NCBI RefSeq assembly: GCF_001194135.2
Contig: NC_068998.1
Location: forward strand, 49,728,376 to 49,792,375
DNA: 64,000 bases
DNA from: Octopus bimaculoides
Taxonomy: Eukaryota
Direction of reading: 5' to 3'
Made by a program: the position numbers and the translations under genes. Shown one piece after another: positions 282 through 62,364 of this stretch. Positions within the stretch are counted from its first letter, which is position 1. Each line of letters opens with the position of its first letter. The notes under the pieces are model-generated. The model had not been told where the DNA came from. It searched no databases and saw nothing but the letters and a program-made list of their open reading frames with translations.

Positions 282-369
282 TCAGTTTGAAGAACAGAAT
301 ATATGTTTGAACACATTACACCCAAAATGTAATGAATATTTCAATCTATTACATAAAATCAAGTGTAAG
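282..369 (+). CDS. Gene A exon 3 (Cys exon, x7-C-x7-C-x11-C)
   Basis: ttttgcag|T CAG TTT...AAG TGT AAG|gtaaga; 88 nt. Confidence 0.85.
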
Positions 370-3300
370 GTAAGATAACTTGTTATTATTGGTCTTACGA
401 AATTTAATGTGTTATTGAACTAAATTATGCACCATATTTAGTATTCTTAATTTGTACTCTTTCTATGTATCACACACAATCACACATTCAGTGCTAAGTT
501 GATGCGGTAGTTGAAAATCATAAATATTTTGGCAATATAAAAATGGTTTCATTTTATCTAATGTTTGCAACAAAAGAACAATCACCGGGACTTTTCTGCA
601 CCTCAGTATTTTGAATTTAAACATCAGATGACCGGTTTATCATTTTTTGTTTTTACGCCACGTCTAATTTTCCTTTGTAACCTTTATTTATCTCATAGTA
701 GGTAACAACTCTGTACAGAAAAAGTGCACCACTGATGTGGAACTGAAAAAACGGTTGGTCCTAAAGCTGGCACTAAAATCGCCATTAAAGAGAAACTGCA
801 TAAACAGAATCACGTCGGGGTCACCAGTTTGTAATAATTCGACCGTGCAAACCAAAGGAGATGGCGACGTAGACGGAAAGGCTCCTTTTAACGATGTCGC
901 ACGGTCGAACACAAAATAAGATATATAACATAGACGGCTCGTCGTGAGAGATACGAGCCATAGTGCCGGTAAAAGAACATAGTAGGACAGACAACCGATA
1001 TATATATAGAGAGAGAGAGTAAGTTTATTAACATAGTGAAACTGTTTGTGTCTGTGTGTGCGTGCATGCGGCAAATAAGAATAACACAGTAGATAAGTCA
1101 GGCCTTCGTGTACAAGAGAATGTATACAACAATGTGAAATAACAGACCGTCGTATAAGCAATAGTGTGTGTACAATATGTGCGTGTACAAGTGCGTGTGT
1201 GAGAGGAACACAGAACAAAGAAAGAGTGTCTGTAACATAGACTGTAAAAAGTCTTCAAACACTGAGATAGAGAAAACCAGTTCGTATACGAGTTACACAA
1301 GATTTAGAATGTAGCAGAGCTGTGGTATCACAATATGTGCGTTGAGCGTCGAATGCTGTGACCGTTTACCTGATACGGAATATTCTAGCTGGTTAGTTCT
1401 GACTGTTGCTCGTGGTGGAAATAATCCACACAAACAGTGTCGATATAAAACTAAGCGTGCTGATATTGGTGCTGGCGACGACATTGTGGTAGTCAGTAGA
1501 TTGGTGGTGAAGACGTTGGCGCTGGAACTGGCTGTAGCTGTGTTCTGTATGTGTGGTCAGCGACCAGACCTGTGAGAAATCTGGAATCGAAGACGACTGC
1601 CGTCGTTGGATAGGGCTTATTTATAGTTGAAATACCGCTCACCGGAAACCCAGAAAAACTCTCTCTCACGTGACCTTATCTGAAGGCCACGATTGGACGT
1701 AATGCACCCTTAGCAAGCAGAACATGGGGACAATTGCTGTGCAAATAAGAACCAATCAGGATGGTGGATAGAAGGGTCCAAGGCAGCCGAAGGCTAGATG
1801 TTAGCTGCTTCGTTATCATTTATGATTGAATGTCCGAGAGAGAGGTTTCACTACACAATCATTACATATATTTTGCGAGAAACGTTTCGTATAAATCACA
1901 CAACGGATGTTGGCTAATGCTTGATTAAACTTAAAAGTCATGTAAAGTAAATTTTCTTGTATTTGTGGAACGGCAATATTTGGGAATACTAATATATTTC
2001 CATAAGTAATAATATATATATTGAAAAAAAAGCTATCTTACAATGAATGAAAATTCCGCTGTAACTCTGATAAAGTCGTTTTCTAAATAATGAAGGGTGG
2101 GCATTTTATGAATTTCGACGTTGTTTCCTCATAAGTTACATTTTGTTAATTACAATTATGATGACGAAAAGACAACTTCTAAGACGGATATGGACCCTAT
2201 TATATCTAATATACTAAACGATTACATAGTGGAAGGCGATTTTGATTAATATTTTTATAAAATAATGAATGGAATATATTTTCAATAAAGAATGTTAGGA
2301 ATGTTGCTCTCCTGTCTATGGAGATTATCATACTTAATATTAATTTTCTCTCAAATTATTTGTAGTTATATCATTAAAGCCTATGAGGCGTGAAATATTC
2401 CCCGTCCCCACATTTTTCACACCATATTTCCAAATGAACCTGAATTTTACGATCCGAAATATAGCTGGAGAAATATGTATGCACACAATGTACTCAGTTT
2501 CTCTGCAACTTAGAGGAAGGAAATTCACACGGTGTAATGTAGCTTAGAGGATACTTTCACCACCGAAGAAAGCGATTTTTACAAATTCCTATAAAATTAT
2601 TATTGAATCTAAACGTATTTGAGTATTTGTAGCAATTTCATAAAACAATAAACATCATATAGAAAGTTCTGGGAAAACAATTTCAAGTGCTTTCCTCCCT
2701 TGTAATTAGGGGCATTAGACACAAGTTAACGAAATTATTTCTATTCTTTGGCTTTATAATTCCTCAGCAGCCCCCATCTTCAGAATATGAAACGATACTG
2801 GAATCAACATTATTTTGGTTAATGCTTGATTGAACTTCTAGTTCTTATGAAGATACGTTGCAAGAACATTTCTATTGCCAGAAGTGTAAAGAAAGACGTT
2901 ATAATGCTATCTAGTGTGATTTTAAATATCGCATTCAATAACTATTGCCTCTTACTGATTAGTAATAATCTTTTGTTTCAGCATTCCCCAAATAAACAGG
3001 CTCAATCGAGAAAACAAGTGGTATGTAATACCGTTTCGCTTAATGATTTCCTGGGATTGTATAGTGGTGCATCTTCAATAAGCTAATATTATAATCACTG
3101 TAACGGAGCGAGCTGGCAGAATGGTTAGCACGCCGAGCGAAATGCTTAGCAGTATTTCGTCTGTTGTTACGTTCTGAGTTCAAATTCCGCCGAGGTCGAC
3201 AATGCGTTTCATCCTTTCGGGGTCGTCTAAATAACTACCAGTTACGCACCGGGGTCGATTTAATCGCTTTGTCTGTTTTTGTTTGTCTCCACTATGTTTA

Positions 3301-5177
3301 GCCCCTTGTGGTGAATAAAGAAATAAATATTGTCATCTCTATATTGATAATTATTTTCACAGTAACAGCTGGTCAACTGAATGTTAAAATTACTACAGCT
3401 GCATCAACGATCTCCCTCCAGGTGCTCTTCTGTTGCTCGCTAGATTATATTTTCATATTAGATTCCATATTTATGTAATGCTTGTAGTGGGCTACATCTA
3501 AATTTACTTTTAGTTCACGGTAATAAAGTAATGTCTTGTGGAAAATGTTTCGAATATTGAGGGAGAGGAATTTCAGAAAGTTCCCACACCTCAATCTCTT
3601 TCCTGACAATTTTCAAAGAAAGTGCTATTTCTTAATGAAAATGTCAAGAAATACCTTTCAAACGTCGTAGAATATGGTCACATGAATTTAACAGAACCTA
3701 CGAGTGGCTAATATTTCACATGGCTTGACTGTATTTTCCCGTACCTTTTGATAACTTAATAACATTTATAATGACGAAAATTTGACTTTTGCAAACCATA
3801 TGATCGCTCGCTGCTATGTTTAGCTTGCCAAAAACTAAGAAAAGGTTAGCCGCTTCTGGGTTTGTTTGACTTTAATAGGCTAAGACCTCCATGAAATCAT
3901 GTAAGAAAAATATGTTTTAAAATAAATGCTTGAATTGTTCTATCCACGGAGAGTTCAGTGAGAGAGTTTAGAATATAGTTCGAAGTATGATAGTAGGCTA
4001 GGTTATCTGAAATCATTTGTGAGAAATTTCATTAATAAATATGTAATATTCGGGAATTTATGACAACAAATTCGATTGTAGGTATAACAAACCAAAGAAA
4101 GGAAATTAATACCGCTTCTTTCTTCAGCCTTATATTTCTTCAACATCTCATTATAATGGGCGTTATGTCCGTTTGTCTGTTTGTGTCTTTTTCACGGTCA
4201 AACGAATGGCCCAATGGTTATGGTGTTTTTCGGGACTACGAAGGAGGTATCAGGAAAATGTGAAAAAGCATGATTATTGAGTGGAAATTGAGGATAACTG
4301 TTCAGTTTAGGGCCGTAAATAAAGTAAAATAAAAAAAATTAAAGGGGAGATAATTATTAAAAGAAGCAAAGGGAAATAGCTCAACTTCTTAGTATAACGG
4401 GCGTTATGAGCGTCTGGTCGTCCGCCAATCTGGATATGTATTGGGGCAACATTTACATTTCGAGAAGCATAGAAAGAGATGTTAAAAAACGTTATCTCAC
4501 AGTGAATTAATATGTCCTGTTGTATTATTTAGCTGTTGTAACTAACTCACGATATAGATGTTTTTCTTTCAGTACTCTACACCAATTAGATCCTCAATTA
4601 CCCGAAATAAGGTATGTAATACCGTTACGTTTACTGATTTGATTGCATATTAGTTTACCTTCCGTAAGCTAACACTATCAATAGATTAATATGTACTGAT
4701 AGAGCCAGACCTCATCAACAAAATGTTAAAATCCCTACGATGGCAAACGTTTTACTAAAATACTCGATTAGCCACACATATCTAAATATTTCCTCGAAAT
4801 TATCTAAATGATATGATTCTTCTCTGCATATTATAGATATAACCAACCAATACAATAAGGTTGATAAATAAGTTAAAGTTGTTCAATATATTAAGATCGA
4901 TCATGTCATTAATATTTGTAACATTTTGATATACAGATTTTAATAAATATTAAAGCGAAGACGTTGAAGTTAATAAGATAACGATGATTGTACACTTGCA
5001 TTAACAAATCTATTGGGAATTATTTAACCAATATAACTGAAATATTTGCAATAAATTATATCGATCAATTTGCATGAAAATCTCCCGACCATAATTATTT
5101 CAATAACGTTCTATTTTTCGCAGGTTAGAAGCGAATTAATACTGGCTACAGCAGTTGTTTGTAAATTAATTTATTAA
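282..5177 (+). CDS. Gene A (5'-partial; exons 1-2 lie upstream of the window): join(282..369,2982..3020,4573..4611,5124..5177). Six-Cys GPI-like family member: ...QFEEQNICLNTLHPKCNEYFNLLHKIKCK|HSPNKQAQSRKQV|YSTPIRSSITRNK|VRSELILATAVVCKLIY*
   Basis: All exons are AG/GT-bounded with compatible phases (2-0, 0-0, 0-0, 0-stop). Exon sizes and Cys spacing match paralogs B-H. AATAAA follows the stop. Confidence 0.8.
690..1830 (+). mobile_element. Degenerate Penelope-like or unclassified repeat remnants in gene A intron
   Basis: GC-richer patch; translated fragments such as NIVGQTT resemble a GIY-YIG region; no intact ORF. Confidence 0.35.
2982..3020 (+). CDS. Gene A stalk microexon HSPNKQAQSRKQV
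   Basis: ttttgtttcag|39 nt|gtatgt; flanks homologous to 4573 and 11236 exons. Confidence 0.65.
3105..3328 (+). mobile_element. tRNA-derived SINE (family 1)
   Basis: tRNA-like head GGAGCGAGCTGGCAGAATGGTTAGC...GAGTTCAAATTCCGCCGAGGTCGAC; many copies in the window. Confidence 0.8.
4080..4440. mobile_element. Non-autonomous repeat (possibly Helitron-derived) with an internal near-direct repeat
   Basis: ataatgggcgttatgtccgt at about 4153 is repeated as ataacgggcgttatgagcgt at about 4393. Confidence 0.3.
4573..4611 (+). CDS. Gene A stalk microexon YSTPIRSSITRNK
   Basis: ttttctttcag|39 nt|gtatgt. Confidence 0.7.
5124..5177 (+). CDS. Gene A last exon, hydrophobic tail VRSELILATAVVCKLIY*
   Basis: tttttcgcag|GTT; aligns with gene B last exon; AATAAA just downstream. 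Confidence 0.8.
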   Translation, partial: VRSELILATAVVCKLIY

Positions 5178-5532: not shown

Positions 5533-6276
5533 TAATATGAAGAGGGTTGGTTATAAGATCGGAATTAAATTCGATTTAAAAAGTGAAGCTATCGCCTTCA
5601 ATTGAATACTAACGCAGGAAGTTTGTTTGAATTAGTTCACTTTGAAAACGTCATAAGAGATGGAAACTTAATGGAATTGGAACGACTAGGATACATATTT
5701 GCATACAGAAAAATGTGTTGCTGCTGCGGTAGAAACATGTTAGTCATTGTTATATATACTATAGAAAACTTGTGAATAAAATGTTTTGGATGTGAATAAA
5801 ATATACATGTTTTGACTTTTAGTTCTAGCAATCCTGGTGCTAATTAGCGCACGTAAAAATTTCTAACAAGCCACCCTTATTATTTATAATATTCACTTTT
5901 ACCATTTATGAAATCAGCGTATGATTTCCACGGTGATCTACTAAGCTGAAAAGGCGAATTGAGTTTAACCTAACGAGACCGACTGGCGAAATACCGCTGA
6001 GCATTTCGTCAAATAAATCTAAATGATGACATATATGTATGCGTGCCTGCATGTGTGTGTGTGAGATGAGAAGAAAACATATTTATATGTAGATAATTTA
6101 TAATATTCGATGATCCTGTAATGGCAACGTGAAATAATAACGGTAATTGACCTTTCAATCGCCTTGCATTAAATCAGATTTTAACAAGAAGATAAAACCA
6201 TAAAATTGTTCGATACATTTAAGAAACTTTCTTATCGTTCACAATTAAATGGATTTATCTTGATAATCCTAGTGAA

Positions 6277-6286
6277 CATCTGTTAC
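6277..6286 (+). promoter_or_regulatory. Family upstream element CATCTGTTAC (gene B)
   Basis: 74 nt before the ATG; repeated at equivalent positions in C, D, E, F and G. Confidence 0.6.
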
Positions 6287-6350: not shown

Positions 6351-6387
6351 ATGAAAATATACATTTTCTTTCCATTTGTTCTTATTG
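6351..6387 (+). CDS. Gene B exon 1 (signal peptide MKIYIFFPFVLI-G)
   Basis: ATG...ATT G|gtaagt; 37 nt as in all paralogs. Confidence 0.85.
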
Positions 6388-9300
6388 GTAAGTACCCATA
6401 CTATAATCCCTCTTTATATTCCTTATATATATATATATATATATGCATAAATATGTAATGTATTTACATGTATATATACATATATATATATACGTTGATT
6501 TCTGCCAGTTAAAAATTTATGTTATCCTTACTGTGTTATGTAGGCTGCTCTCCTCCCTAGGTTCACCTTAAATAAGACGTTTAACAACACGTCTATCGTA
6601 CAACGATGACGTGTCTTGTGCATCGTAAATGGTCCCTCCCTCATGAGAAGTGATACTACAGAAAGAATGACAGCTAGGCTAAAAACCGCTCTATCTGGTT
6701 GTTTTATCTCCAGTTTATAGTTACGATGTGTGGAGGCGCAATGGCCCTGTGGTTAGGGCAGCGGACTCGCGGTTGTAGGATCGTGGTTTCGATTCCCAAA
6801 GCGGGCGTTGTGAGTGTTTATTGAGCGAAAACACCTAAAGATCCACGAGGCTCCGGCAGGGGATGGTGGCGAACCCTGCTGTATTCTTCCACCACAACTT
6901 TCTCTCACTCTTACTTCCTGTTTGTGTTGTGCCTGTAATTCAAAGGGTCAGCCTTGTCACACTGTGTCACACTGAATCTCCTCCGAGAACTACGCTAAGG
7001 GTACACGTGTCTGTGGAGTGCTCAGCCAATTGCACTTTAATTTCACGAGCAGGCTGTTCCGTTGATCGGATCAACTGGAACCCTCGACTCTATTGACTGT
7101 GAAACGATTTGCTCAAATCGATAAAACAGTGGAATAAGTTCACATTGTGCTCAATACATTTTTCCTGAAACGGGCGAAATGGGAAGATCATATTTACACT
7201 GCCTTGGTATACACGGAAACCATACTATGATTTAGAAACGACCCTTGGAGTAATACGAGTGTTAAATCGCTCAAGATGAATCGTGAACAGCTCTTTACAA
7301 ATGACTGACAAGAGAGTCGTGCAGTGAGAAATCATCCTCCCGAGTCGATGTAAAAAATGAAATTAGTATTGCGCCAACTCATACCAGAAGGCCAATTTCA
7401 GTTCCCATTAATGTTTTAAAAGGGTATTTGTCGCCAAATTTCACCATGACATTTAATACTATCTACACCAACAATTGGTTTTCTTATTTAAAATTCTTAT
7501 TGATTTTGAGACATCATCTAAAGTCGGTTCATTAGCCATATTATTGTTATACTTCCTATGCTTTGGATAATATCAATAACTACATTGAAAGACCTATTGA
7601 AAAGGTTTATATAGTGCTCAGCTCAACGTATGGACGGGATGTCAGTTAAGAGACATTTCTCCCCAACAGAATGAACTGGGGCTATTGCAGTTGTTCTGGG
7701 TCCACAAATGTCTTTAATGAAGTAGAAATTAAAACGTGTTTTGGGGGGTTTTATGATTTACAGTACATGTTGGGAATCCTACACTGGAAACACCACCATG
7801 AAATTACTCGCTTGAACCTAGTAACATATGCGCTCAGGCGCGTAAAAATAAAATCAAAGAACTAAACAGCTGCCAGATCCAAGACGTCAATGTATACGTG
7901 GGAGCCATTTTAATGCAATAGAGGCAATTGTTGAATCATGGAGGCCCTTCCTATCAAGGTACTGAGACCAGCTATAAACAACAGAACAGACGTACATACA
8001 CTAGTGTGGTTTCTATAGCATCACCAGTCCGTACATGACATCATTCTCTGCAGATACCTGAGCAACATTTCCTACTTCTCACTTTTTTTAACTGTCTTGA
8101 AGAAGAGTTACAGACCTGAAATATACAAACATAAGGTAAAATCACAACTTTGTTTAGAGCTTGTTTCTTTTTGTAGTTTATATCTTCACGCATTGTTCCG
8201 TCATTATCAAACAAATCACCAGTTCTACTGTGCGAGAATTCGCACAAAAGTACACATGTGTATAACTTTAAATTAAAATGTGCGTGTATGGACGTGCATG
8301 TCCTTATGCTTGTTTGCATATATAGCTACGTACAATTATTAGATTAGCTATATAGTCGTGTCGCACTTAAAATTGGGTGAGCAACAAATAATTCGTCGCA
8401 ATAATATATCCGCTCATTATTGACAACGTAATCTCGTTTGTTCTGCAAATTGTTGTTCCTTTGGACGTAATATTCTTCTACTTTTAGATGTGTCAATCAA
8501 TACCGCTTTTAAACTCTATACAATAATAAGCTGTTTTCACTCCAAATAACATTTCAGTTATCTTCAAAACTTAAGAGTGTGATGGAACACGGTGACGAAA
8601 ATATGGAACGTATTGAAAAATCTCCAAAGTTAGCGCAATAAGGTTTTCTTAGAATAACGTGAGCAATATGTTGTCATGTACTATCGCGTAAGAGCCTTAA
8701 TGTTTTACGTTTCACCGACGATGGTCGCTTTTTCTGTGAATGTCTTGTGCTATGGTTACAATGGACGTCAATTTTCTCCACATTGAATATTTCACTTTGA
8801 TTTACCAGTTCATCATAGGCATTGACAGACGATATATTACATTCTTCAAATAATTTACTGAACAATGTATTTTCCAAAAATGCTGCTTTTTGAATATTAT
8901 AAATATATATTTAAAAGATCTGATATATTTTACTTTTTGAATTTCAGGCGCCGACATGGGAATCATTTGTCCACCAATGGCAAGACGACACTGTGATATT
9001 CCTGTATCCTTTTTCAAAAGTCTCCTCCACGATGAGTCGTTTTGCGAGTATATATACTTTTGCTCTTCGACTGTTGACTTTTTACTCAATAACTAAGCAT
9101 ACACTTTCTAACAAACATCTCGGTTAGCCCTTCCTTCTCGGCCTTAATATCTGTCTCTGGGCCTATTTCTCCCAAGTTATATACATTAATCTATATTCCT
9201 CAAGAATTAATACATTATGAAGAATGCCGCCAAAGCCTTTTCAAAATGTGCCTATATATTATGTATGTGTGTATGTGTGTTTGTGTATTTCTGTCAATGT

Positions 9301-11905
9301 GCGTGCACATATATCTATCTACCTGTATTGCGTGAGTGTGTGCATGTGTGTGTGTGCGTAACTGTGACTCGACAACTTATCAAGCTGGTGGACAACCTAG
9401 CCATATTGATCATATTCTCATCAGAAAATGTGATGAATGGATTCTCAAAAGCGCAAATCTGTTCCCCAGTGAAAGATGCACTGCTCTGCATAGGTTAGAC
9501 ATTGACGACTTTAGAATATATGCTTTCAGGGGCATACCCATCTGGAAAAGAAAGATCTGGAAGCTTAAGGATCCTCTGGATAGCTACAGATTTAGAGGCG
9601 GCCTACTTGAATAATTTACCGAGAAGGAGGATAGGTTACAGACATGTCACTCGATGGATAATTGGACGTCTCTACGCGACAACATACTGAAGGCTAAGAC
9701 CAAGTTTGTGGCTAATCCAAAGTCTCAACCAGTCGTAGCGTGGCATGGCCGCGGAATATTGTAGGTGGAAGCACCATTAAAGCAAAGAATCTGACTTGGA
9801 AAGACTGGAAGGCTGTAATTCTCTGTACGATAAGACATATATAAAAAACATAGCATACACATTTATGAAGTAATTCACTGTGTGAGATGTCTGCTTAGAT
9901 ACAAAAAATGCTTTGAAAATATATGAAACACGTATGTGCTTAATTTTTCACAATTTTCTAAAATACGATTACTTTTCAGTGAATATCGAGCAAGCGCTAA
10001 ATGTTTGCATGCAATACACGACCATTGTAATATATATTTCATACATGCCTATCAGCATAAGTGTAAGGTAAGACAATATTTATATTGAACTCATTATTAG
10101 AAGTCATGCCTTGTGGATTAAATTCAATAGCAGATTTTTTTTTTAAAATTCATGTTGCTAATTCATATGGAATCATTGACAATAGGATGTATTCAATATT
10201 GTATGCAGTTATGGCAGCGAAAGCTGATTAGGTAATTATATTGAAACTGAAACGCAAGATTTCTCCCCGTTCATAAACAAATCGTTTCTAATCTCTCGTA
10301 GCTAACTTAATATTTCGATGCTTTTCTTCCAGGACATTGAAACATATCCAGGCTACCCCATGCAAAATATGGTAATTATTCGCATTAGTTGTAAAGATTT
10401 AATATCACCGACTTTGTATATTATTTCAAAGAAATGAACATTTTTTGAAGGAAGTTTTCACACATATCTTTTTAGATTGTGTAGATAACGATTTCATTAG
10501 AATCATTGTGAAAATCTTTTCAAATAATTTCAAGGAGAATTTTCTGGTGGGATATACGCCCTGACATGTTTCATCATAAAATTCAAAATGGGGTGTGTTT
10601 TAATGATAATTTAAACATGTATCTTTCAGATGGTGTGAATTATATCAGACGTTAACGTGAATAAAAAAAAACATGGATTGACATGTAACGTATCTCAGGT
10701 TTGTTTTCCCAATATTTTGAGAATAATTTGCATTTATGTTGAGGAAAAACTTTAATTGTGAGGTTAACGTGAGCCAAGCTACTTCTAGCATATTAAACGA
10801 CCTGGTAGAGGATGAACAAATATTTAGCTTATTAAGAGGAAAACGATAGAGGTAGAGAAGGAGATATTAAAGCTGCTATAAATAATTGAAAAAATACTAT
10901 TCAAAATTTAGTACAGCATTGTACCTTCCATTATTTAAACATTCTATTCAAAGAATTTCGGGAAACGGTAAAATAGCCCACATATACGTTTAGCCTAGTT
11001 GTAATGGAATCATCACAAAAACTAAGGATACAACGTTGAGCTCCACAAAATATCGGCCGTTTCAAATTTGTTGATATTAACTTCCAGTATAATCGCAATA
11101 ACACCATTTGCCAAAACGTAATTGCTCTATATGTTCTAGATGTACCTACATTGACGTTAAAAAGAGCTATCATATGTGAATTAACTTGCAGTGTTGAATT
11201 AACTTTAACTCCGTATATTAATTCTTTACTTTCAGAACTCTGTGCAACTGAACGCAAAACACATCAGAAATAATGTATGTAATATCATTACGACTAATGA
11301 TTTAGTATCACTGCGATTGCATATTAATGTACTTTCAATTAGCTAACACTGTTACTGAATTTCTACTAATTGATACAGTTAAAGCTCAATGGCTATACCA
11401 ATAGTGTTCGAGTCATTTCCAACAATTTAGGCCATTTCATATTAACAGAATACTTATAATCCTCATAGTGAATGTGATACGGCGTTATGTCCAGTATATA
11501 AAATATGGTTTCCAAACTGCTGTTTTAATTATAATGCCGCTTTTGAATAGTATAATATTGTTTGAGTAATATATCACTTGCATAGTTATAATACAGCTGC
11601 ATTAATATAATGGTAAATGAATCACTTTGAAATTTCAAGGTCAATGAAGAAAATAATACTGGTAATAGTATCAACAAATATTCCGAGAACTGGTAACTAT
11701 CATATAGTTACATTACCAAGACTATTTTTTTTTTTAGATATATTTAAGCACTAAGGCAGACACATTTACAGAAATTAACTCGGTACATTTGTATGAAAAT
11801 TTCAACTCTACGTGTATGTGAATAACGTGTCATTTTGTTCTATTTTTACAGGTCGGAATGGAATTGGCATTTGCTTCTGCAGTTGCTAATAAATTTATAT
11901 ATTAA
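6351..11905 (+). CDS. Gene B: join(6351..6387,8948..9047,9980..10067,10333..10371,11236..11274,11852..11905). MKIYIFFPFVLIGADMGIICPPMARRHCDIPVSFFKSLLHDESFCDEYRASAKCLHAIHDHCNIYFIHAYQHKCKDIETYPGYPMQNMNSVQLNAKHIRNNVGMELAFASAVANKFIY*
   Basis: Continuous ORF across canonical AG/GT exons; signal peptide, 6 Cys, stalk and hydrophobic C-terminus. Confidence 0.85.
6728..7090 (+). mobile_element. tRNA-derived SINE (family 2)
   Basis: A/B-box head GGAGGCGCAATGGCCCTGTGGTTAGGGCAGCGG...GGTTTCGATTCC; near-identical copy at 27540. Confidence 0.85.
8948..9047 (+). CDS. Gene B exon 2 (C-x7-C-x16-C)
   Basis: atttcag|GC GCC GAC...TTT TGC GA|gtatat; 100 nt. Confidence 0.85.
9340..9830 (+). mobile_element. Non-LTR retrotransposon 3' fragment
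   Basis: Degenerate coding-like sequence with multiple stops, in gene B intron 2. Confidence 0.45.
9980..10067 (+). CDS. Gene B exon 3
   Basis: acttttcag|T GAA...AAG TGT AAG|gtaaga; 88 nt. Confidence 0.85.
10333..10371 (+). CDS. Gene B stalk microexon DIETYPGYPMQNM
   Basis: cttttcttccag|39 nt|gtaatt. Confidence 0.65.
11236..11274 (+). CDS. Gene B stalk microexon NSVQLNAKHIRNN
   Basis: ctttactttcag|39 nt|gtatgt. Confidence 0.75.
11852..11905 (+). CDS. Gene B last exon VGMELAFASAVANKFIY*
   Basis: tatttttacag|GTC; AATAAA about 8 nt after the stop. Confidence 0.8.
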   Translation, partial: VGMELAFASAVANKFIY

Positions 11906-12601: not shown

Positions 12602-12611
12602 CATCTGTTAC
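12602..12611 (+). promoter_or_regulatory. Family upstream element CATCTGTTAC (gene C)
   Basis: 76 nt before the ATG. Confidence 0.6.
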
Positions 12612-12677: not shown

Positions 12678-12714
12678 ATGAAAATTTATATCTACATTTC
12701 TTTACTCAGTGTTG
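12678..12714 (+). CDS. Gene C exon 1 (signal peptide)
   Basis: ATG AAA ATT TAT...GTT G|gtaagt. Confidence 0.85.
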
Positions 12715-46964: not shown

Positions 46965-48410
46965 ACACATATATATGAGTGTGTGTGTGTATAGATATAT
47001 CAATATATATCAAATATATATGTATGTATATGTATATATATATATATATATNNNNNNNNNNNNNNNNNNNNNNNNNNNNNNNNNNNNNNNNNNNNNNNNN
47101 NNNNNNNNNNNNNNNNNNNNNNNNNNNNNNNNNNNNNNNNNNNNNNNNNNNNNNNNNNNNNNNNNNNNNNNNNNNNNNNNNNNNNNNNNNNNNNNNNNNN
47201 NNNNNNNNNNNNNNNNNNNNNNNNNNNNNNNNNNNNNNNNNNNNNNNNNNNNNNNNNNNNNNNNNNNNNNNNNNNNNNNNNNNNNNNNNNNNNNNNNNNN
47301 NNNNNNNNNNNNNNNNNNNNNNNNNNNNNNNNNNNNNNNNNNNNNNNNNNNNNNNNNNNNNNNNNNNNNNNNNNNNNNNNNNNNNNNNNNNNNNNNNNNN
47401 NNNNNNNNNNNNNNNNNNNNNNNNNNNNNNNNNNNNNNNNNNNNNNNNNNNNNNNNNNNNNNNATATATATATATATATATACATATATATATAGTCCTG
47501 GGGTCGATTTGCTCGACTAAAGGCGGTGCTCCAGCATGGCCACAGTCAAATGACTGAAACAAGTAAAAGAGTAAACCACAGAATGATCCTGATCGAAAGG
47601 GAAATTTTCCAAATTTTGCGAGAAAGCAATGTAACAATAAACATTAAATTTCAAAGAGAAAATAAATAACTCAGTTCCGTTGGCAAAAGTTTTGTTCTAC
47701 TTGTCTGAATAACCGAACGGATTAGACTGATAAAGAGTTTTGAAAGGGCTGAAATTGTTTCTATTTCTAGATTTAGCGCTGTATGATTAAGGTCAAACAT
47801 TTAAAGTACATTCAACTCCTTCGTCACGCTTTAGCGACATCAATTATAGTGAAGAAGAGATCAAAGTATGTTTAAAGGGATGAGAAAAAGAGGAGGGAAT
47901 AGGGCTAACTTCAACATACATATGGCATCTGAGGATTATTTTACAACTTGTTAAATTTGCTTTCGATTTATATAAAAATTGCATGACCTGCAAAGCTGGA
48001 GCGCACGCCACTTAAGTATAGATTAGCTTTATTTTGGCTGTTAATAATTAATTGCATTCGAATGAATCGACACCATTATTTGTATTTTTCAAGTTTACTC
48101 GCTATTCTATTGTTCTTTTCTCACCACAACACTGTTAACATCTAAAGCACAAGCTTCCATATCCATACAAAAATGATTTCAGAATCATGAAACTGTACAA
48201 TTTTCAAAAGTACTAAATCGTATGCGATTCGTGGAATTAACACTGGCAAACATCTGTTACAGTGCTTCTCACTATACATACGTGCATACACACTTCCATA
48301 CATATATACTTACATATATACTTACATATATATATACTTACATATATACATACATACGTATATACATACATATATATATATGTATACGTATAAATAAACA
48401 CATGCATGTA

Positions 48411-49665: not shown

Positions 49666-51362
49666 CAACACCGAAAAATACATTAGGAATGAGAAACTAG
49701 GTTCGAAATTTCCCCAAGTCACCTAATGAAGCCTGGAGGGTATATCAGCCGAAACGTCGCGTTAACAATAAACAAGATGAGGACAAACATCCGTCAAATG
49801 AGGGCATTCCTAAGCACGTGATCATAGTTTGCTTTCAGTTCCTTTATTAATCCAGTTTATATAAATGACTTATGCATTTAACTTGTTGTTACATGCCTAC
49901 TTCAATTTTATTAAATGTTTTACTGCAGGCTTTATATATAATTTGTAAATAAACCAAAGTTTTAAATTCTTAGGTGTTCCGTGGTATGGAGATTGCCTTA
50001 ACCAGCATAACAGTCGTTGTAATGAAAACATTATTGAAAATACGTGGTATAACTTTTGCAAGTATATATAAATATACATTTATCATCATTTCATTAGACA
50101 ATTCTGTAATACAATTAATATTTAAACATTCCGTCATTATAAAAGTTCATATATACCGAAATTTTTATCGGTAAAAAATTGGAAAATTGTATCCATTTCA
50201 AAATTTGATATATGTCAGTATGTTCATATTTATATTGTGCGTTGTTTTTCCGATACGCTAATGCACATTTATATTTTTAATAAATGTATTGTTCATTGCT
50301 AAATTAAAAGGCAAAACACGGTTTGCTTGGCATTTGATGCATGTCACAAGATACAAAGTTTTTATGTACACTAAAAATATTTCTTTGTATGTATTTCATA
50401 TCACAATACCTAAATAACATTTCATTAGTTAGATATTTCCAGTAAATGCATCAGTTATTCACAGGTTAGTGCTCAACGAAAATATAGCCTGTGCGTATGT
50501 TATACGATTTAAAACAATAATGATAATTCGTTTAATAGGGCCTAGTTTTCTTTTATTTCCGTTGTTCTGCATGACGGTGCAGTAAAGCACTAGAATTGAA
50601 ATCACTTGATTCCCACTGCGCAGCACCTTAGGCATGTACGTTTTGCTATAGACTTACATCACCTAATGCATTATGAGTGAATCTGGTGGATGAGAATTGG
50701 TCATTAGCCAGAATATATAGTATCCAGTATATATACATACATATCTATGTTGTTGCGTCTATGAACCCTCACTCCAATATTTGAAAATGGAGGTTGATTT
50801 GTGCAGGCCACTTTAACCTGTCAGTTTAATAAGAACTGTCAATAACACAAGCACAAAACATTAAAGTGAGTAACTATGAGACTGGACCAGCTAAAATTCC
50901 AGGTGACTGCTAATAATAGCAGCGAGTAAAGTAGAAGAGATATAGGGAACGAGAAAACCCTATTAACTAGATTCGAATTTTAACATTATTTCATTTCACA
51001 TTTTACAAAATATTTAATATCATACCAGAAATTTGAATATTCAGGTTTCAATTCCTAAGTGCTTTCTTTTTCTTACAGAATTTACACGACTTCTAAAAAG
51101 TGCTTTAATAACCTGTCAAAATATTGTCTTGGATTCTACGATTTCTATCATAAACACAAGTGTTTGGTAAGATATTAGAATTAATTTTGATCCATTCATA
51201 CCAACAGTTTCTCAGTTAACAAACGATACAATGCTTAGATTTGTTAAAACATGTGACAAGGACATTGCTCGATAGTAACCGTTAAAACAAATCTTCCTGT
51301 ATTCATACTTTGTCACTAGCCTGTTATTTCCTGAAACTAGATCGAAGTAAATAGTAGCAATT

Positions 51363-51399: not shown

Positions 51400-52200
51400 C
51401 ATATATACATGTATGTGTGAGAGTGTGTGTATATAAATTCACGTTTTCTTTTTCAGTACAATGACCAAAGTAACAGTTTTGAAAACAATGCTGAGGTACG
51501 TTATGTTATTACTAATCATCTGTGTGTCACAACTCGACATCCAGTGATAGAGCCTCGATTTCATTGTAAGATATACATGCTGTTAATGTATACATACATG
51601 TATATATATACTGTATATGTATATGGTGCGTGTCTATGTGTGTGGATGTAAGATGAGTATTTAGGTGAGTAGTATTGCAAGGTATGGTTAAAGATTCTTC
51701 TAGACATATACATACTTGTGCCGTATGTATATATATCTATACATATACACATATACATATATGTATGTATATATAGAATGTATATATAAAATGCGGCGTC
51801 CTTTAAGTTACCTTAAGAGTCGATTAAAACGACTGATGCAGCTTAACTTTTATCTGAATAAATATGTAATTTTCGGTGAAATACTAGTCATATCGAAGTT
51901 AATATGTGCATTGGAGAAGCTGTGTTACTCTCAAATTAAATAATCTGAAATAGAAATTTTATATTAATTTCTTGTAAGACCCTAAGTCAACTATAGCCAA
52001 CACGACAACACTGTGATACAGTTATATTAACGTTACTTATATAAATTCTTATTTAGATATTAAATATACTGTAACATGTATTGTCTTCAAGCACTTAATG
52101 TACACATTTGAATGAACATATTTCTGGTCTTCTTTTGCAGGTCCATTTTCAGTCCGTATATGTTACTGCAATTATGGTGATGTTAAGCAATGTTATATGA
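46785..52200 (+). pseudogene. Gene G pseudogene: psi-exon 1 46785..46825 (MKTSVLFTSLLIF-G after removing one extra A; donor gtaagt is now aaaagt), psi-exon 2 47771..47865 (LALYD*GQTFKVHSTPSSRFSDINYSEEEIK), psi-exon 3 50302..50386 (IKRQNTVCLAFDACHKIQSFYVH*KYFF), stalk exon 51457..51495 (YNDQSNSFENNAE), last exon 52141..52200 (VHFQSVYVTAIMVMLSNVI*)
   Basis: Collinear homologs of every exon type in the correct order. Frameshift, stops, lost Cys and lost splice sites in the first three exons. Promoter motif at 46701. Confidence 0.7.
49537..49800 (+). mobile_element. SINE with tRNA-like head, (TAA)n spacer and Penelope-like 3' end
   Basis: ggcgtagtggttaagagcgcgggctac...gatcgattcc head; ctaatgaagcctgg...cagccgaaac tail. 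Confidence 0.65.
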
Positions 52201-56655: not shown

Positions 56656-56692
56656 ATGAAATATTACTTTGTCTTAATTCTACTCATGGTTG
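56656..56692 (+). CDS. Gene H exon 1 (signal peptide)
   Basis: ATG AAA TAT TAC...GTT G|gtaagt. Confidence 0.85.
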
Positions 56693-56937: not shown

Positions 56938-59900
56938 CTGTAACATATGTGACAATTATTGGGTACCCATGATAAAACTCCGAGTTACGGATGCCGGGGT
57001 GGAAACCCACGCCGCTATCTCTTCAGTTGTTTGGCCATTGAAAATTGCTATGGAAATGACGGGTCATTTATATATATATGTTATTGCGCTTTACGTAATT
57101 TGGATCCGGTGCTGAAAGGTGATGTTTCAACAAATCTTTTAGGGAATATAATTTCCAAAGATGTCAATTTGATGAATTGCAGCGATTTTAATAATTGACA
57201 ATATCGTAGTGTAAAAATAGTTTGGACATCTCTTGTGAAACTAAAGGTATCTATACGACAAATTCCTGTTTATCACTATACTATCAGTTATATAACTATT
57301 ACCGACGTGCAGGAATACCATATTTCGTTATCGAACGATAATATACTAGAAAGTATATTAAATGCTTTATAAGATAACACTGTTATTTATTCTGTTGGCA
57401 GTGATATTAAATCAATTGTTTATGTTATCTCTAGAGTTTTCTGCAGATTATTGCTAGTACTAATTTTCTTTACGATGTTTTGTATTCGAGACACCTGATG
57501 TAAAGAACAAAATGCAAATCTGTAGAGATAACCTTAACAAAATAATTAATGCTCATTAAGTTTATATTTGTTTGCCATGTGCATGATATAAACATATTGC
57601 ATATTTTGGTGGTAAATTTAAATAACGGATTATATCACTGAGAAAATCCTGTGGTTTATCTACCACGATTGATGTTATCTGATGCATTTGAAATAATCAC
57701 ATTTCCTATATAACACATCTATCAACAATGATGTGAGATGATGTTTATGAGTAGTTTTAAAAGCATATTCCTGAATTGGAGTAGGAAAAAGCATTCCATT
57801 TTTGTTTCCATTTGTGTTTTCTCTGTGTTTTCTGAAAGGTACAACGATTTCATACAAAAATTCAGAAAGACATTAGAGAATGTTCACTGCATAAGAATAT
57901 TTACTTTTAATTCTGTGTTCTGTTCGTAAAGCTTTCTCTCAGAGAACTACATATAAACAATGCTCACCCACACACACAAAACGGATTATATCACGGACAA
58001 AAAGATCCTGTGGTTTATCTACACACACATTTATACATGCAGACATAGGAACATACACACACACAGACACACACGTATACAAATAAAGAAAACACATAAA
58101 TGTTATTTAATATGCCACACAAATGCAGTAACTAAGGTATTCCTTTACTATAATTCACCGTATATCTATTGCATGGATTATTCAATGCCATATCTCGAAA
58201 TCACAAGCTATAATAATGTTTCAAATGTTTAGGTGATGTGATGTCCACCGATTGTATTTATTTAGCAGCCGAGACATGCCCTAAAGCCAATGTGAATTTT
58301 ACAATAATAAACCCTGAATTCTGCACGTATGTATGGCATCACATATACTTTTACCTCAGATATTATTATATTGTAATTACTTGATATCAAACCTATGCCT
58401 AACATTCCTTGCAGTCTTACACTTCTTCAAATAAATGTACTGAACTTCGTGAATGCAATTGACAGTAGTAATTAAGAGTTATCTTACATATGGATAAAAT
58501 AGTTAATAAATGCGATTTTTATCATAGTTTGAAGTTATTGTTAATAAATGTATTCCTGAATTGGTGTATGGAAAAGCATTCTGCTATGGCTTTTGTAAGT
58601 GTTCTACCTGTTATATGAAAAGTATAGTGACTTTCTCCATATATATTAAAATACTGTTGGTACTCCCGTTTATTTTATCCTGAATATTAAAGAATGTTTA
58701 TTCCGGCAAAATATTTATTATTGATACTGTATTTTGCATGCTATACATATTTGATAACTATTTTTTTGTCTTCCAGTGAGTACCTGAAACATCATAAATG
58801 TCTTCATGAAATACAGAATTCATGCGTTGATTTCTATGGCTACTTATATTACAATATATGTGTCGCGGTAGGAGCAATATTTCAATGAATCAAATATACA
58901 TAGGTTATCTGTTAAAATGAAACTTATTAAATTAAATTCGTTGATAGCATTCATTTTATATACATACATATATGTACGTGCGCGTGTGTGTGTGTATGCG
59001 CGTATATGTTTATATACGGTGTTTCCCTGGAAATGAGACCTACCATGATTTTTCAGGCTGTTTTTAATATAAGTACTACCCCGAAAATAAGACCTAGTCA
59101 GAAACGCATCAGCTTGTTAGCAAGAGCATGTGATGTTTGCAAAATAAGCGAACTACCGCAGCTTGGCTAAAGTCTGCGCTAAGCACGTATGCACGGAGTT
59201 GATTCCCTTGTACCCCAGGCAAGATAAATGTAAAGAGAGTCATTCTGTGGAGTACAAGAAAGGAATTGTGGAAGAGTCTCATAACAAAAATCTTACGGCA
59301 TTCTCTAAGGAGAAGATGTTGGATCTCCGAATGTTTAGAAAATAGCGAGAAGAGTATAATAATCTGTTAGGGGTGCGTCGCCAATTTACATTCCCTCCAC
59401 TGGCTACGAAAGTGCACGAGTTACATATATTTTGGCAGTTCGTCTCGATGGAAGTAAAACTCCTCCTTTAATCATCACCAAAGGCAAGAAGGATAGAATT
59501 GAAGGCGTTTCAGGCATCTGTGTTCTGGAAACTGAAAAGGCATGGTGTACACAGGCAGTTTTAAGGAAATGGATCGATTTCATGCTGCCATTGATTTTGC
59601 GAGGAAGCGAAAGAGGTATGATAGTTTGGGATTCAGCCAGCACGACCGCGCAAAAGACATGAAGAATTTCCTTGCAGAAAGGAGAATAGATCAAATCATG
59701 ATTCCCGCAGGAATGACTGTTTATCTCCAGACTCTTAATATTGCAATAAATAAACCATTCAAGGACAACTTACGCATGGAAATTAATGACTACATTGAAA
59801 GCAGAATAGTGAGAAATGAGAGTGGAAATTTTGTGAAGCCCAGACTACAAGAGATCGTGACTTGGGTGACAAATTCATGGAACAAAATCACAGACAGCTG

Positions 59901-61753
59901 TGTTGCCAATGCGCTACGAGCAGGCTACCTGGATAAAAACTTCTCATTCCACGAGACCTTTATTGCTTGACATGAGAAAATAGGAGCGAAAATTCTGCAG
60001 GAAATTGAGTTAAGCGAAAACTCCGCTGGAATTTTGGAAACCGATGACTTGCAAGACTTTCCAAAGGATGATGATATGATCGTGTTTGAATAAATTGTTG
60101 TTAATGAGTTTCTGAATAAAAAAATGTTAATGGTAAGTAAATGTAGATCGTTTATCGTAATTTCTGTTTATTTAGAAATCTCGGAATTTTTATTTTGTAA
60201 TTTCATTTTTTGATATATCAAAATAAGTCATCCCACGAAAATAAGCCCTAGTGTCATATTTCGGAGTGAAAATTAATATGAGCCCTGTCTTATTTTCGGG
60301 GAAATACGGTAGGTGTGTGTGTATGTGTACTGAACGTATTATCTTTGAAGAAGTGAGAGCGAGAGCTGGTCAACACCTTTCTACATTAAAAATTTCTGTT
60401 CACGCCATGTTTTCTGGCTCGTTACTTTCTGAACACAAATTCTGTCAAGATTGATTTAGTCTATAATCTTTCATAGCTATTAATATACATTCAAATAATT
60501 TTACAATCTGCATGATCTTTTATACTCAAAAGCTCTTGCTTTGTGCCAACATTTGAAAGGAATATATATTATCTGAAAGTGAACATTACATCGAAGAAAT
60601 ATAAATAAGCTACTTATTCTTAAAAAAAAAAAATGTTTCAATATTCACACAACACATCCTAATAATTCTCGTCCCACTGCAAGGGAAGGATTTATGTCTT
60701 TTACTCGTTCGTCGTGTATATTTTATAAGTTATTTAAATTGTTATTCCATCGCCTATATTGAAGATTGTTTCAGATTTTTAGAGTCTGTGGAATACTATT
60801 ATTTTAGCACAGACTGTTCATTTCAGGAATCTAAATACACGTAAACTTATCTATCATCCTTGAAAGTTTAGGAGAAGATGCGCACAAAATACAATAACCA
60901 ATAATGATTACTTTTACTGCATCATTTTCTTTTACAGTTAGTTGTATAATCCTGACTACAGCTTGTAGGTATATATAATATTTGCTTCTAATTTCTCCTT
61001 TGCGATACAAGTATGTTTGGGCAGGGGTCTAACCACAGAAAGGATGTAATGCAAAGTCAACATAATTTTTAATTTAATATCTGTGTTTGAACAGTATAAG
61101 AAAAACTGATATTGTAACAGGCATTTAAATATTCTAGACTTTAAACCTACCAGTGGCATATCATAGAGTTAATTCGTGCGAAGTACGAGATATGTATGAT
61201 AGTTTAAGTTGAAATGGTAAATGTATATTTGATTTTATAATGGTAATGAAATTATAATTGATTTAACATATTTTTCGGAACTTAGTTCTAACAAACTGCT
61301 GAAATTTTATTTCCAGTATGAGAGCTCCAGCGAAGAAAATAAGGTAATAATTTAAATTTCATTAGCTCAGTATCAAAATATGTTACAGTTGTAGATTCAA
61401 CGATAACACATTTACTTCACTATAGGTTATATAAATATTACGTCATTGTAATATGCGAAGAATACGATAATAATGACTCAAAATCATAACTTAAATGTGA
61501 TCCAAATTTTTCTGCTGGTGGCGTATTCCCATCCATGTTTATAAGTGGTTCACATTATTACATACGATCTCTGTCTTTTCAAAATTGGCTAGTGTTCTTC
61601 ACGTTTTTGCAACGAATCACAAACGGAAAATTATGGGGTGAGGTTAGCCTCATTCCTATTATGTGGGACCCACACTTAAAGATTCTGAACTTAAGTAATT
61701 TGATGCATATGCCTTCCAAATTTCGATTTGGATATTTGGGAACACCCGCGATA

Positions 61754-61816
<63 letters not shown>

Positions 61817-62364
61817 GACTAGACAATATAATATATAATACGTGTGTGTGTATGTGTCAGCATGTCTCTGAATGTGTGCGTGTGTGTATGTGCATGCATG
61901 CGTAAGTATTTGTATCCGCCCTTTTCTTTTGCTCAGTAATTTCAATATTCTATACAATCAAGTTCTATATTACAGCAATAAATTCTTGCATGTACTTACC
62001 ATTTCGCTATCCTAACGCTATCATTTGCAACCAGTAATCGTTAATCCCCCCGAATACTCATATTATATACATCGTAAATATTTCTTACATTAGTCTAGGA
62101 TATTGTAAATTATGTTGTTTAACGTTTAGTGGGATATACTTATAATAACAATTCCTCATAACATCGGATATATGGTATAATACCAGAATCGTAGGTAGTT
62201 TGTAAATTGTTCTGTTTATACTGAGCATTCATGCATATGAACACATACGAATTATTCATTTACATTTTTCTGCATTCTCTTTCAAGATTTCGTTCCGGTT
62301 CATGTTCGTTGCTGGAGCAGTGATTGTATTTGCAATGCATGATTACAACCTTTGGACACAATAA
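56656..62364 (+). CDS. Gene H: join(56656..56692,58233..58326,58777..58867,61317..61343,62287..62364). MKYYFVLILLMVGDVMSTDCIYLAAETCPKANVNFTIINPEFCTEYLKHHKCLHEIQNSCVDFYGYLYYNICVAYESSSEENKISFRFMFVAGAVIVFAMHDYNLWTQ*
   Basis: Open spliced frame with canonical sites; C-x7-C-x14-C-x8-C-x7-C-x11-C; N-glycosylation sequon NFT. The last exon is the most divergent. Confidence 0.8.
58233..58326 (+). CDS. Gene H exon 2
   Basis: atgtttag|GT GAT GTG...TTC TGC AC|gtatgt; 94 nt. Confidence 0.85.
58777..58867 (+). CDS. Gene H exon 3
   Basis: tttgtcttccag|T GAG...TGT GTC GCG|gtagga; 91 nt; lies within track ORF 58694..58888. Confidence 0.85.
59017..60309 (+). mobile_element. pogo/Tigger-like DNA transposon (DDE), near full-length but frameshifted, in gene H intron 3
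   Basis: TA-flanked TIRs (CGGTGTTTCCCTGGAAATGAGAC / GTCTTATTTTCGGGGAAATACGG); IPAGMTVYLQTLNIAINKPFKD and VWDS motifs. Confidence 0.85.
61317..61343 (+). CDS. Gene H stalk microexon YESSSEENK
   Basis: tttatttccag|27 nt|gtaata. Confidence 0.7.
62287..62364 (+). CDS. Gene H last exon ISFRFMFVAGAVIVFAMHDYNLWTQ*
   Basis: ttctctttcaag|ATT; hydrophobic stretch; AATAAA overlaps the stop. Confidence 0.6.
   Translation: MSFRFMFVAGAVIVFAMHDYNLWTQ

Follow-up and report, generated by a model that had tools for sequence, protein, structure and literature searches.

An Octopus gene cluster encoding small six-cysteine proteins probably related to the RGM N-domain

The DNA analysed here, a window of 64,000 nucleotides (nt) on chromosome CM046618.1 of Octopus bimaculoides (assembly GCA_001194135.2; window base 1 at about 49,728,376), carries seven paralogous genes, which we call A to F and H, and one orphan first exon, X. 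The window is AT-rich and contains 12 runs of N. The encoded pre-proteins have about 90-110 residues each and are built around one small domain with six invariant cysteines. With moderate confidence, we read these genes as part of an Octopus-restricted expansion of stand-alone RGM_N-like mini-proteins, which are probably anchored by glycosylphosphatidylinositol (GPI) and would act as extracellular binding modules.

Results

Seven paralogues share one gene architecture

Translated self-comparison and a cysteine-pattern scan of the window brought up two recurring short peptides, one of the form C-x7-C-x12/14/16-C and the other C-x7-C-x11-C. A hidden Markov model (HMM) of exon 2 recovered six window copies at E=1e-14 to 1e-18 (next match 0.13), and an HMM of exon 3 likewise six at E=1e-12 to 1e-15 (next match 0.2), a count that excludes E exon 3, which was removed by the N filter and observed directly. 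Exons 2 and 3 together encode one domain of about 60 residues. An AG acceptor and a GT donor flank every domain exon copy; exon 2 ends in TGC-NN/GTAT in all copies (a slash marks the splice site), and exon 3 ends in /GTAAGA, but in /GTAGGA in H. A scan for ATG, 34 nt and GT placed a first exon of 37 nt, with donor G/GTAAG and encoding MK(I/Y)Y and hydrophobic residues (MKIYIFFPFVLI type), 1.4-3 kb 5' of exon 2 in B, C, D, E and H.

The paralogues thus have common exon sizes (37 / 88-103 / 88-91 / 27-39 / 51-78 nt), common intron phases (1, 2, 0, 0) and a common cysteine scaffold, C-x7-C-x12/14/16-C-x8-C-x7-C-x11-C; extra in-frame mini-exons are present in A and B. A self-blastn of the window returned only microsatellites and repeats resembling short interspersed elements (SINEs), because the paralogues, at 21-33% identity, are too diverged to be visible at the DNA level. 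Orthologues in O. bimaculoides and O. vulgaris are 67-80% identical, and the family therefore evolves fast. Scans of the window for tRNA genes and Rfam families were empty. The open frames, six cysteines and splice sites kept in seven paralogues at only 21-33% identity require purifying selection.

An initial annotation of this window, made from its letters, had proposed a tandem cluster of at least eight paralogs. The paralogous cluster is real and far stronger than chance would give; it consists of seven cysteine-domain loci and one orphan exon 1 instead of eight full loci, and "tandem" was an overstatement, since D is inverted and is the sole minus-strand gene among the window members. The exon sizes, phases and scaffold given there hold in essence, except that F has an x12 spacing and an 88-nt exon 2 and that exon 2 of C measures 97 or 103 nt. 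Its view that B, C, D, F and H splice into open proteins of about 105-120 residues needs correction for B, whose expressed form has 90 residues owing to an in-frame TGA. Also supported are the N-terminus resembling a signal peptide, the six-cysteine domain and the short, hydrophobic last exon of the kind seen in GPI signals.

The six-cysteine domain resembles the RGM N-domain

A profile made from the window sequences alone finds the proteins P0005 (E=1.6e-22), P0010 (2e-9), P0016 and P0017. Two of these exceed the curated cut-off of 24.2 bits for Pfam RGM_N (PF06535), P0016 with 37.9 bits and P0010 with 29.1 bits; P0016 lies within the orthologous O. vulgaris cluster, as judged from the consecutive accessions CAI9735829-41. 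When 28 single domains were compared with Pfam, 16 matched RGM_N at E<=1 (best 1.7e-4), and no other family was matched by more than one. A PDB sequence search with the 28-domain profile gave the N-domains of RGMB, RGMC and RGMA as the top five matches (best E=0.004, to RGMB), aligned over D-x-x-F-C-x-x-L-R-x-Y-x-x-C-x7-C.

Fifteen true RGMs, all carrying PF06535 and PF06534, served as controls. In hhalign, their RGM_N sequences aligned with the octopus domain over C3-C4-C5 (P=7.8e-5). Against an HMM of these 15 N-domains, the real domains scored 10.8 bits on average and cysteine-keeping shuffles 2.0 bits (200 shuffles per domain), with a mean of 3.5 bits for the best shuffled set; the 28 domains are mutually related, and these values are not independent of each other. 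The scores indicate that the similarity to RGM_N reaches past the cysteine framework.

AlphaFold2, run on the 28-sequence alignment, predicts with high confidence a small three-helix bundle of about 60 residues holding the six cysteines (predicted local distance difference test 91.3; helices 2-11(+15-18), 25-39 and 43-59), and the model of a two-domain relative has the same helix pattern. The RGM family includes RGMA, RGMB-DRAGON, RGMC-hemojuvelin and DRAG-1, and typical animal genomes have one to four conserved RGM genes. Their second domain, RGM_C (PF06534), is a vWD-like domain with a GDPH autocleavage site and is the neogenin-binding part. RGMs are GPI-anchored; in RGMB the N-domain forms a bundle of three helices held by three disulfides, and the RGM N-domain is enough to bind BMP/GDF ligands, which it does at the type-1-receptor site (PMC7354924). 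The octopus proteins have the identical core C3-x8-C4-x7-C5, share the motif D-x-x-[FY]-C-x-x-[LM]-R-x-Y-x-x-C and are likewise predicted to be extracellular, with a signal peptide, a six-cysteine helical domain of about 60-70 residues and a GPI-type C-terminal signal.

Several observations weigh against this kinship. Among the window proteins, C and D reach only E=0.02-0.04 on RGM_N, and E, H and B do not match it. The hhalign probability is 61.5%, and the alignment covers 31 columns, half of the domain. The outer cysteine spacings differ: C1-C2 is x7 in octopus vs x4 in RGM, and C5-C6 is x11 vs about x21, which implies a shorter helix 3. The ligand-contact motif C-R-G-[DN]-L-x-Y-H, nearly invariant in the 15 true RGMs, is not conserved; the octopus domains vary there and retain no more than a hydrophobic or aromatic residue at +3/+4 and, usually, Tyr at +7. 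In RGMB, Arg100, Gly101, Leu103 and His106 touch BMP2/GDF5 (PMC7354924). No member matches RGM_C, and the proteins end 25-45 residues past the cysteine domain. With the single-domain model, Foldseek found no PDB match; the two-domain model matched generic helical structures only, at E>2.9, and neither search brought up an RGM. Searches of the Foldseek type are weak on helical bundles of 60 residues.

Such a record could also come from an independent new cysteine-rich helical domain whose RGM_N likeness is convergent, arising from the C-x8-C-x7-C spacing and a disulfide-stapled helix-loop-helix; the layout of signal peptide, domain and hydrophobic tail would then stand, yet no function could be drawn from RGMs. 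The Foldseek result, the roughly 31 aligned columns, the differing outer spacings and the missing RGD-Leu-His contact motif all speak for convergence, and small cysteine-rich domains are prone to spurious profile matches. We nevertheless think it unlikely, for the two families share P-D-x-x-[FY]-C-x-x-[LM]-[RV]-x-Y-x-x-C, shuffles that keep the cysteines score about 9 bits lower, RGM_N is the only recurrent choice of the single domains, two relatives pass the curated Pfam threshold, every top PDB match is an RGM, and both families, the octopus one by prediction, combine three helices and three disulfides on proteins that are GPI-anchored, probably so in octopus. True homology of the domain to RGM_N is, in our judgement, likely. 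The claim of the initial annotation that the proteins belong to no named family thus gives way to a consistent though weak RGM_N likeness, with close Octopus relatives above the Pfam cut-off.

The octopus proteins are not filed as RGMs. They have about 100 residues vs about 430, and they form a large, fast-diverging tandem array that includes forms with 2, 4 and 8 domains. The same six-cysteine domain (profile E down to 1.6e-22) occurs in LOC128248155 (8 repeats, O. bimaculoides), in CAI9735841 (4 repeats and a hydrophobic tail, from the orthologous O. vulgaris cluster) and in LOC118763774 (2 repeats, O. sinensis). In these multi-repeat proteins, which are likewise uncharacterised, the YP-x3-PD-x2-[FY]C-x-RL signature is stronger than in the window proteins and the RGM_N scores are higher.

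Other small disulfide-rich families were considered. Ly6/uPAR proteins (CD59, Lynx1) are alike in that precursors of about 100 residues pair a signal peptide and a GPI signal with a single small disulfide-rich domain, and also in their tiny exons, tandem clusters and tissue-specific, fast-evolving expression. Their own fold, however, is an all-beta three-finger with 8-10 cysteines and a CCxxxxCN end, whereas the octopus domain has six cysteines, no CC pair, a predicted all-helical fold and no match to Pfam UPAR_LY6. Saposin-like proteins were rejected, as neither SapB nor its kin matched in Pfam at E<=10 and the spacing differs from C-x2-C ... C-x5-C. Odorant-binding proteins, Kazal and Kunitz domains are ruled out by cysteine pattern and predicted fold. 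Weak Pfam matches to EBA-175 region VI, GF_recep_IV, PLA2 and NPR2 each came from a single member and were rejected.

The genes are precisely spliced and strongly tissue-restricted

The RNA evidence consists of assembler contigs and word depths from coded public runs, and the spliced transcripts come from run X13. In this run we found junctions for A, B, C, D, F and H, the spliced reads that the initial annotation had named as its check. For B they are 6387^8948, 9047^9980, 10067^10333, 10371^10630, 10698^11236 and 11274^11852. D is joined from tail to exon 4, exon 3 and exon 2 and ends in a poly(A) tail; H is covered by a single contig over exons 1-4; and exon 2 of C is preceded by the last bases of exon 1. 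The gene models are thus real and precisely spliced.

Word depth in X13 reaches 6.9e5 for D and about 1e5 for C, compared with 3e3-1e4 for A and B, 4e2-8e2 for F, about 10 for H and tens to hundreds for introns. Family transcripts were zero in five further RNA runs (X23, X24, X44, X45 and X46), and words of D exon 3 were found in only 2 RNA runs of the index (X13 and X43). Expression is therefore strongly tissue-restricted. Being very high and limited to one kind of sample, it points to a major product of a specialised tissue.

The assembly gaps leave the recognised exons untouched. All 12 are intronic or intergenic and no coding exon abuts one, the shortest distances being 55 nt (3' of E exon 3) and 67 nt (5' of E exon 4). 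RNA contigs link C exons 1 and 2 over gap 12972-13161 and D exons 2 and 3 over gaps 24248-24442 and 25142-25372; a RefSeq model links E exons 3 and 4 over two gaps, and the gap in D intron 1 is bridged only by an NCBI model of 104 residues.

It is highly improbable, in our view, that the loci are decaying pseudogenes or annotation or assembly artefacts whose transcripts are noise or mis-joins at gaps. The orphan exon X, the in-frame stop in the expressed form of B, the use by F of a repeat-derived upstream exon with a GC-AG intron in place of a proper exon 1, and the many gaps in the window would fit that explanation. Yet frames, cysteines and splice sites have been kept through deep divergence, the transcripts carry poly(A), are spliced with precision and occur at very high levels, both O. 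vulgaris and O. sinensis have orthologues, and no exon touches a gap.

Membrane anchoring and bulk secretion

Exon 1 and the start of exon 2 would encode a short cleaved signal peptide (M-K, about 10 hydrophobic residues, G-A/V). Behind the cysteine domain comes a polar linker with many small residues, spread over one to three mini-exons; the last exon contributes 13-17 mostly hydrophobic residues, with which the protein ends. No paralogue has lost this tail exon, which shows the conserved features V-[RG]-x-[DE]-L...K-[LF]-I-Y and is part of the dominant transcript of D. Small residues (G/S/N/A) lie 8-12 positions upstream of the hydrophobic stretch, and a neighbouring gene, P0009, carries a textbook GPI-type tail. 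What marks a GPI signal is a hydrophobic stretch at the very end of the protein, not followed by any cytoplasmic residues. We infer that the C-terminal exon is a GPI-attachment signal.

Two points count against anchoring: the tails are short (13-15 residues) and contain K/R, and the extreme mRNA levels of C and D fit a bulk secreted product no worse than a signalling co-receptor. The proteins might be small products secreted in bulk (gland, mucus, gamete-coat, pheromone, antimicrobial or venom-type) instead of membrane co-receptors, with a C-terminal hydrophobic exon that is a removed pro-segment or a sorting signal or is absent from the main isoforms. The levels of C and D are extreme in one sample, with nothing elsewhere, the expressed form of B terminates ahead of the tail, and isoform X2 of C, in which the linker exon is missing, has no space for a GPI omega site and spacer. 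Moreover, the orthologues diverge rapidly and the genes are tandemly expanded, a combination typical of reproductive, defence or venom proteins. Bulk secretion would be compatible with an RGM_N-like domain. We hold it to be somewhat unlikely, in view of the tail exon retained in all paralogues and in the main D transcript, the terminal hydrophobic stretch typical of GPI signals, and the GPI anchoring of RGMs (PMC7354924).

The family extends beyond the window and is found in Octopus

The cluster continues beyond the window on both sides, as extending it in both directions showed. The 27-kb upstream flank (L002) holds two more members and A exon 1; LOC128249835 lies upstream, as does an apparently unannotated copy at L002:2793-4902. 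Downstream, LOC128249749 (L003:22624-25133) follows about 5 kb after H, and three small genes (L004:634-23321) lie 400 kb further on. The 8-repeat protein LOC128248155 is encoded on another chromosome.

A profile of the window sequences run against 1.84 billion representative proteins found 17 proteins at E<=1e-3, all from Octopus (O. bimaculoides, O. vulgaris and O. sinensis) and including the 2-, 4- and 8-copy tandem forms. The expansion thus appears Octopus-restricted, in line with the lineage-expanded family first proposed; the birth-and-death evolution suggested with it agrees with two signs of gene death, orphan exon X and the premature stop in B. A word-indexed protein search with the 28-sequence profile returned two members, both already known.

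The genes had also been called hidden, which is true in part. C, D, E and H are already modelled in RefSeq, as LOC128249866, LOC128249864, LOC128249865 and LOC128249936, each named "uncharacterized protein" and with no Pfam domain (P0001 is E, P0002 is C, P0003 is H, and P0004 and P0074 are D in the RefSeq/NCBI models). For A, B and F, the protein search returned no protein model, though its queries included their sequences. A, B, F and one upstream copy are therefore without a protein model among the searches made. In practice, annotation partly misses genes whose exons are all <=103 nt. A literature search for the LOC identifiers or for an octopus cysteine-rich GPI family found nothing.

A shared upstream motif

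The 11-mer ACAT[CG]TGTTAC occurs six times in the window, vs 0.18 expected.
6276..6286, + strand: ACATCTGTTAC, 75 nt before the B ATG
12601-12611, + strand: ACATCTGTTAC, gene C
28779-28789, - strand: ACATGTGTTAC, gene D
32646-32656, + strand: locus X, farther from the ATG
36936-36946, + strand: gene E
48250..48260, + strand: ACATCTGTTAC, gene F, just before a microsatellite and gap 48444-49114

In B, C, D and E the motif lies 75-92 nt upstream of the exon-1 ATG, and it also precedes two copies outside the window (L002:2707 and L002:22674). The greater distance in X is due to a SINE-like insertion. The motif contains an E-box, and an ACGT core follows about 30 nt later. It is probably a shared promoter element, putative as yet, and its recurrence suggests co-regulation of this sub-cluster.

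Gene models

Gene A
5' of the window, + strand: exons 1-2, with an exon 1 candidate at L002:22762
282..369, + strand: exon 3, 88 nt, second half of the cysteine domain (HMM E=1e-13; X13 junction 369^2982, depth about 2900)
2982..3020, + strand: exon 4, 39 nt, HSPNKQAQSRKQV (X13 junctions 369^2982 and 3020^4573; AG/GT flanks)
4573..4611, + strand: extra in-frame mini-exon, 39 nt, YSTPIRSSITRNK (X13 junction 3020^4573)
5124..5177, + strand: tail exon, predicted join, VRSELILATAVVCKLIY and stop (tail HMM E=3e-4; AG acceptor)

At the mini-exon of A a downstream donor GT is present, yet the X13 contig continues unspliced.

Gene B
6351..6387, + strand: exon 1, 37 nt, MKIYIFFPFVLI (X13 loose end at 8947 matches 6357-6386)
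8948..9047, + strand: exon 2, 100 nt, C1-C3 (HMM E=3e-17; X13 junction 9047^9980, depth 3853)
9980..10067, + strand: exon 3, 88 nt, C4-C6 (HMM E=1e-14; X13 junction and loose ends 10067^10333)
10333..10371, + strand: exon 4, 39 nt, DIETYPGYPMQNM (X13 junction 10371^10630)
10630..10698, + strand: stop-bearing exon, 69 nt (X13 junctions 10371^10630 and 10698^11236, depth 5000-6400)
11236..11274, + strand: mini-exon, 39 nt, 3' of the stop (X13 junctions; AG/GT flanks)
11852..11905, + strand: tail exon, VGMELAFASAVANKFIY and stop (tail HMM E=2e-7; X13 junction 11274^11852)

The 69-nt exon of B reads ATG GTG TGA and so places an in-frame stop at its third codon, which leaves an expressed form of 90 residues with no hydrophobic tail; were this stop absent, all seven exons would be in frame. 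B is either a soluble tail-less variant or a copy heading to decay. Its transcript extends to at least 12714.

Gene C (LOC128249866)
12678..12714, + strand: exon 1 (37-nt scan; RefSeq; X13 loose end at exon 2 has the exon 1 end)
15299..15401, + strand: exon 2, 103 nt (HMM E=1e-17; X13 depth about 1e5; RefSeq X2 model)
16069..16156, + strand: exon 3, 88 nt (HMM E=9e-15; RefSeq model P0002)
16880..16927, + strand: candidate exon 4, prediction only, 48 nt, NSHELKKLEASTTRNM (open frame 0, polypyrimidine-AG acceptor, GT donor)
17760..17810, + strand: tail exon, VRMDLLFSAVLLYKLI and stop (identical to P0002)

RefSeq isoform X2 of C omits the linker exon, that is, candidate exon 4. Exon 2 of C has tandem acceptors 6 nt apart at 15299/15305 (aag/tttcag/), the second giving 97 nt, so that the predicted signal-peptide cleavage region reads SV-VSG-AM or SV-G-AM.

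Gene D (LOC128249864)
20992..21051, - strand: tail exon, GMTELLLSIAASSYLMRYL and stop (X13 junction 21051^21882, depth about 1.4e5)
21882..21911, - strand: exon 4, 30 nt, SQNGGTAQKK (X13 junctions on both sides; P0004, P0074)
22921..23008, - strand: exon 3, 88 nt (HMM E=3e-12; X13 depth about 6.9e5; loose end has the exon 2 end)
25585..25684, - strand: exon 2, 100 nt (HMM E=1.5e-18)
28667..28703, - strand: exon 1, MKIYIFIAFLIC (37-nt scan; 104-residue NCBI model)

A poly-T loose end in X13 places the poly(A) site of D near 20966.

Locus X
32904..32940, + strand: orphan exon 1, MKIFIIIAFLIS/GTAAGT (37-nt scan)

Exon 1 and its donor are intact in X, and a SINE-like insertion of about 170 nt separates the promoter motif (32646) from the ATG. 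HMMs taken to E 30 and the RNA revealed no exon 2, exon 3 or tail, and runs X13, X23 and X24 hold no splice junction of X. We treat X as a relic, a dead locus, because no downstream exons were found by HMM or RNA.

Gene E (LOC128249865)
37028..37064, + strand: exon 1 (37-nt scan; RefSeq model)
38422..38521, + strand: exon 2, 100 nt (HMM E=2e-16)
39952..40039, + strand: exon 3, 88 nt (translated self-comparison; P0001)
42027..42059, + strand: exon 4, 33 nt (identical to P0001)
43732..43791, + strand: tail exon (tail HMM)

Gene F
49974..50061, + strand: exon 2, 88 nt, C-x7-C-x12-C (HMM E=3e-14; X13 junction 50061^51079, depth 392)
51079..51166, + strand: exon 3, 88 nt (HMM E=2e-14; X13 junction)
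51457..51495, + strand: exon 4, 39 nt, YNDQSNSFENNAE (X13 loose end after 51166 matches 51457 onward)
52141..52200, + strand: predicted tail exon, VHFQSVYVTAIMVMLSNVI and stop (open frame, ttttgcag acceptor, hydrophobic)

A proper exon 1 of F is absent, its expected place being occupied by a TA-rich microsatellite and gap 48444-49114, in which it seems to have been lost. In X13, exon 2 of F is joined through a GC-AG intron (depth 538) to an upstream exon at 49771-49813 that falls within a highly abundant repeat. The peptide encoded there would be MRTNIRQMRAFL, not a signal peptide; the exon may be an alternative first exon derived from the repeat, or the contig may be chimeric. Exon 2 also has an alternative donor at 50046, 15 nt upstream of 50061 (depth 190 vs 392), whose use would remove five residues including Cys3.

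Gene H (LOC128249936)
56656..56692, + strand: exon 1, coding part (X13 contig 56386-56692^58233; P0003)
58233..58326, + strand: exon 2, 94 nt, x14 spacing (HMM E=3e-14; X13 junctions)
58777..58867, + strand: exon 3, 91 nt (HMM E=1.5e-13; X13 junctions 58326^58777 and 58867^61317)
61317..61343, + strand: exon 4, 27 nt, YESSSEENK (X13 junction; P0003)
62287..62364, + strand: tail exon, ISFRFMFVAGAVIVFAMHDYNLWTQ and stop (identical to P0003)

Exon 1 of H is transcribed from 56386 or earlier, at least 270 nt 5' of the family-type ATG. The RefSeq model of H begins at an in-frame upstream ATG, 56602, which adds 18 extra basic residues ahead of the signal peptide.

Repeats and other features of the window

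Several SINE-like or other interspersed repeats lie at 3102-3281, 14139-14346 (-) and 17263-17445; at 32590-32887 and 47494-47575 (-); at 6726-7088 and 27543-27860; and at 49720-49833. Their RNA depth is very high in every RNA run, with up to 2e5 in X13 and about 1000 reads in X23/X24. One repeat pair is 92.8% identical over 319 nt, and one copy has been inserted towards the 5' side of the dead locus X.

Two 186-nt stretches, 54773-54958 and 55223-55408, are 100% identical and lie on either side of gap 55026-55222, where they are most likely an assembly artefact. At 35180-35551 (+), a threonine-rich open frame of 123 codons (MTTSTTMTKTTMTPTT...) lies within a strong AT skew, with a few X23/X24 reads and one non-canonical joint (35250 to 35505). 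This frame could represent a low-complexity exon of mucin type or simply a repeat.

Discussion

The new point would be the RGM_N-like identity of a stand-alone, expanded and probably GPI-anchored module with extreme tissue-specific expression; the genes themselves were already partly annotated.

We then propose a model for how these proteins may work. If the domain is a diverged RGM_N (PF06535) homologue, the mature product would be one disulfide-stapled three-helix RGM_N-like module on the outer membrane leaflet, and the stop-bearing exon of B and the skipping of exon 4 in C could release soluble forms. The module could serve as an extracellular binding unit, that is, a co-receptor, decoy or presenter of a secreted ligand, and the low identity of the paralogues would imply diversified specificities. 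By analogy with RGMs, the sole precedent for the bound ligand would be a member of the TGF-beta/BMP family. The initial guess of ligands, receptors or co-receptors at the cell surface happens to agree, in its co-receptor form, with the role of the RGM N-domain, although the RGM ligand-contact motif is not conserved.

It is tempting to go further and picture an RGM N-domain that was detached and multiplied, with lipid-anchored or secreted modules and multi-repeat forms serving as traps or presenters of TGF-beta/BMP ligands or of a new ligand class. We consider this decidedly unlikely; if true, extracellular signalling would be under an additional level of control specific to this lineage, with the modules made in bulk by one specialised tissue.

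We know of no earlier case in which the BMP-binding module of RGM occurs as an independent gene product or has expanded to dozens of copies. If the RGM_N link is true, the octopus family would be the first of both. Octopus genes so far free of any function would gain the hypothesis of ligand binding at the cell surface, and a clear case of domain liberation followed by tandem expansion would join protocadherins, C2H2 zinc fingers and chemotactile receptors among the lineage-specific families of cephalopods. Two members, with expression that is both very high and very restricted, suggest that one octopus tissue makes a major product so far unrecognised.

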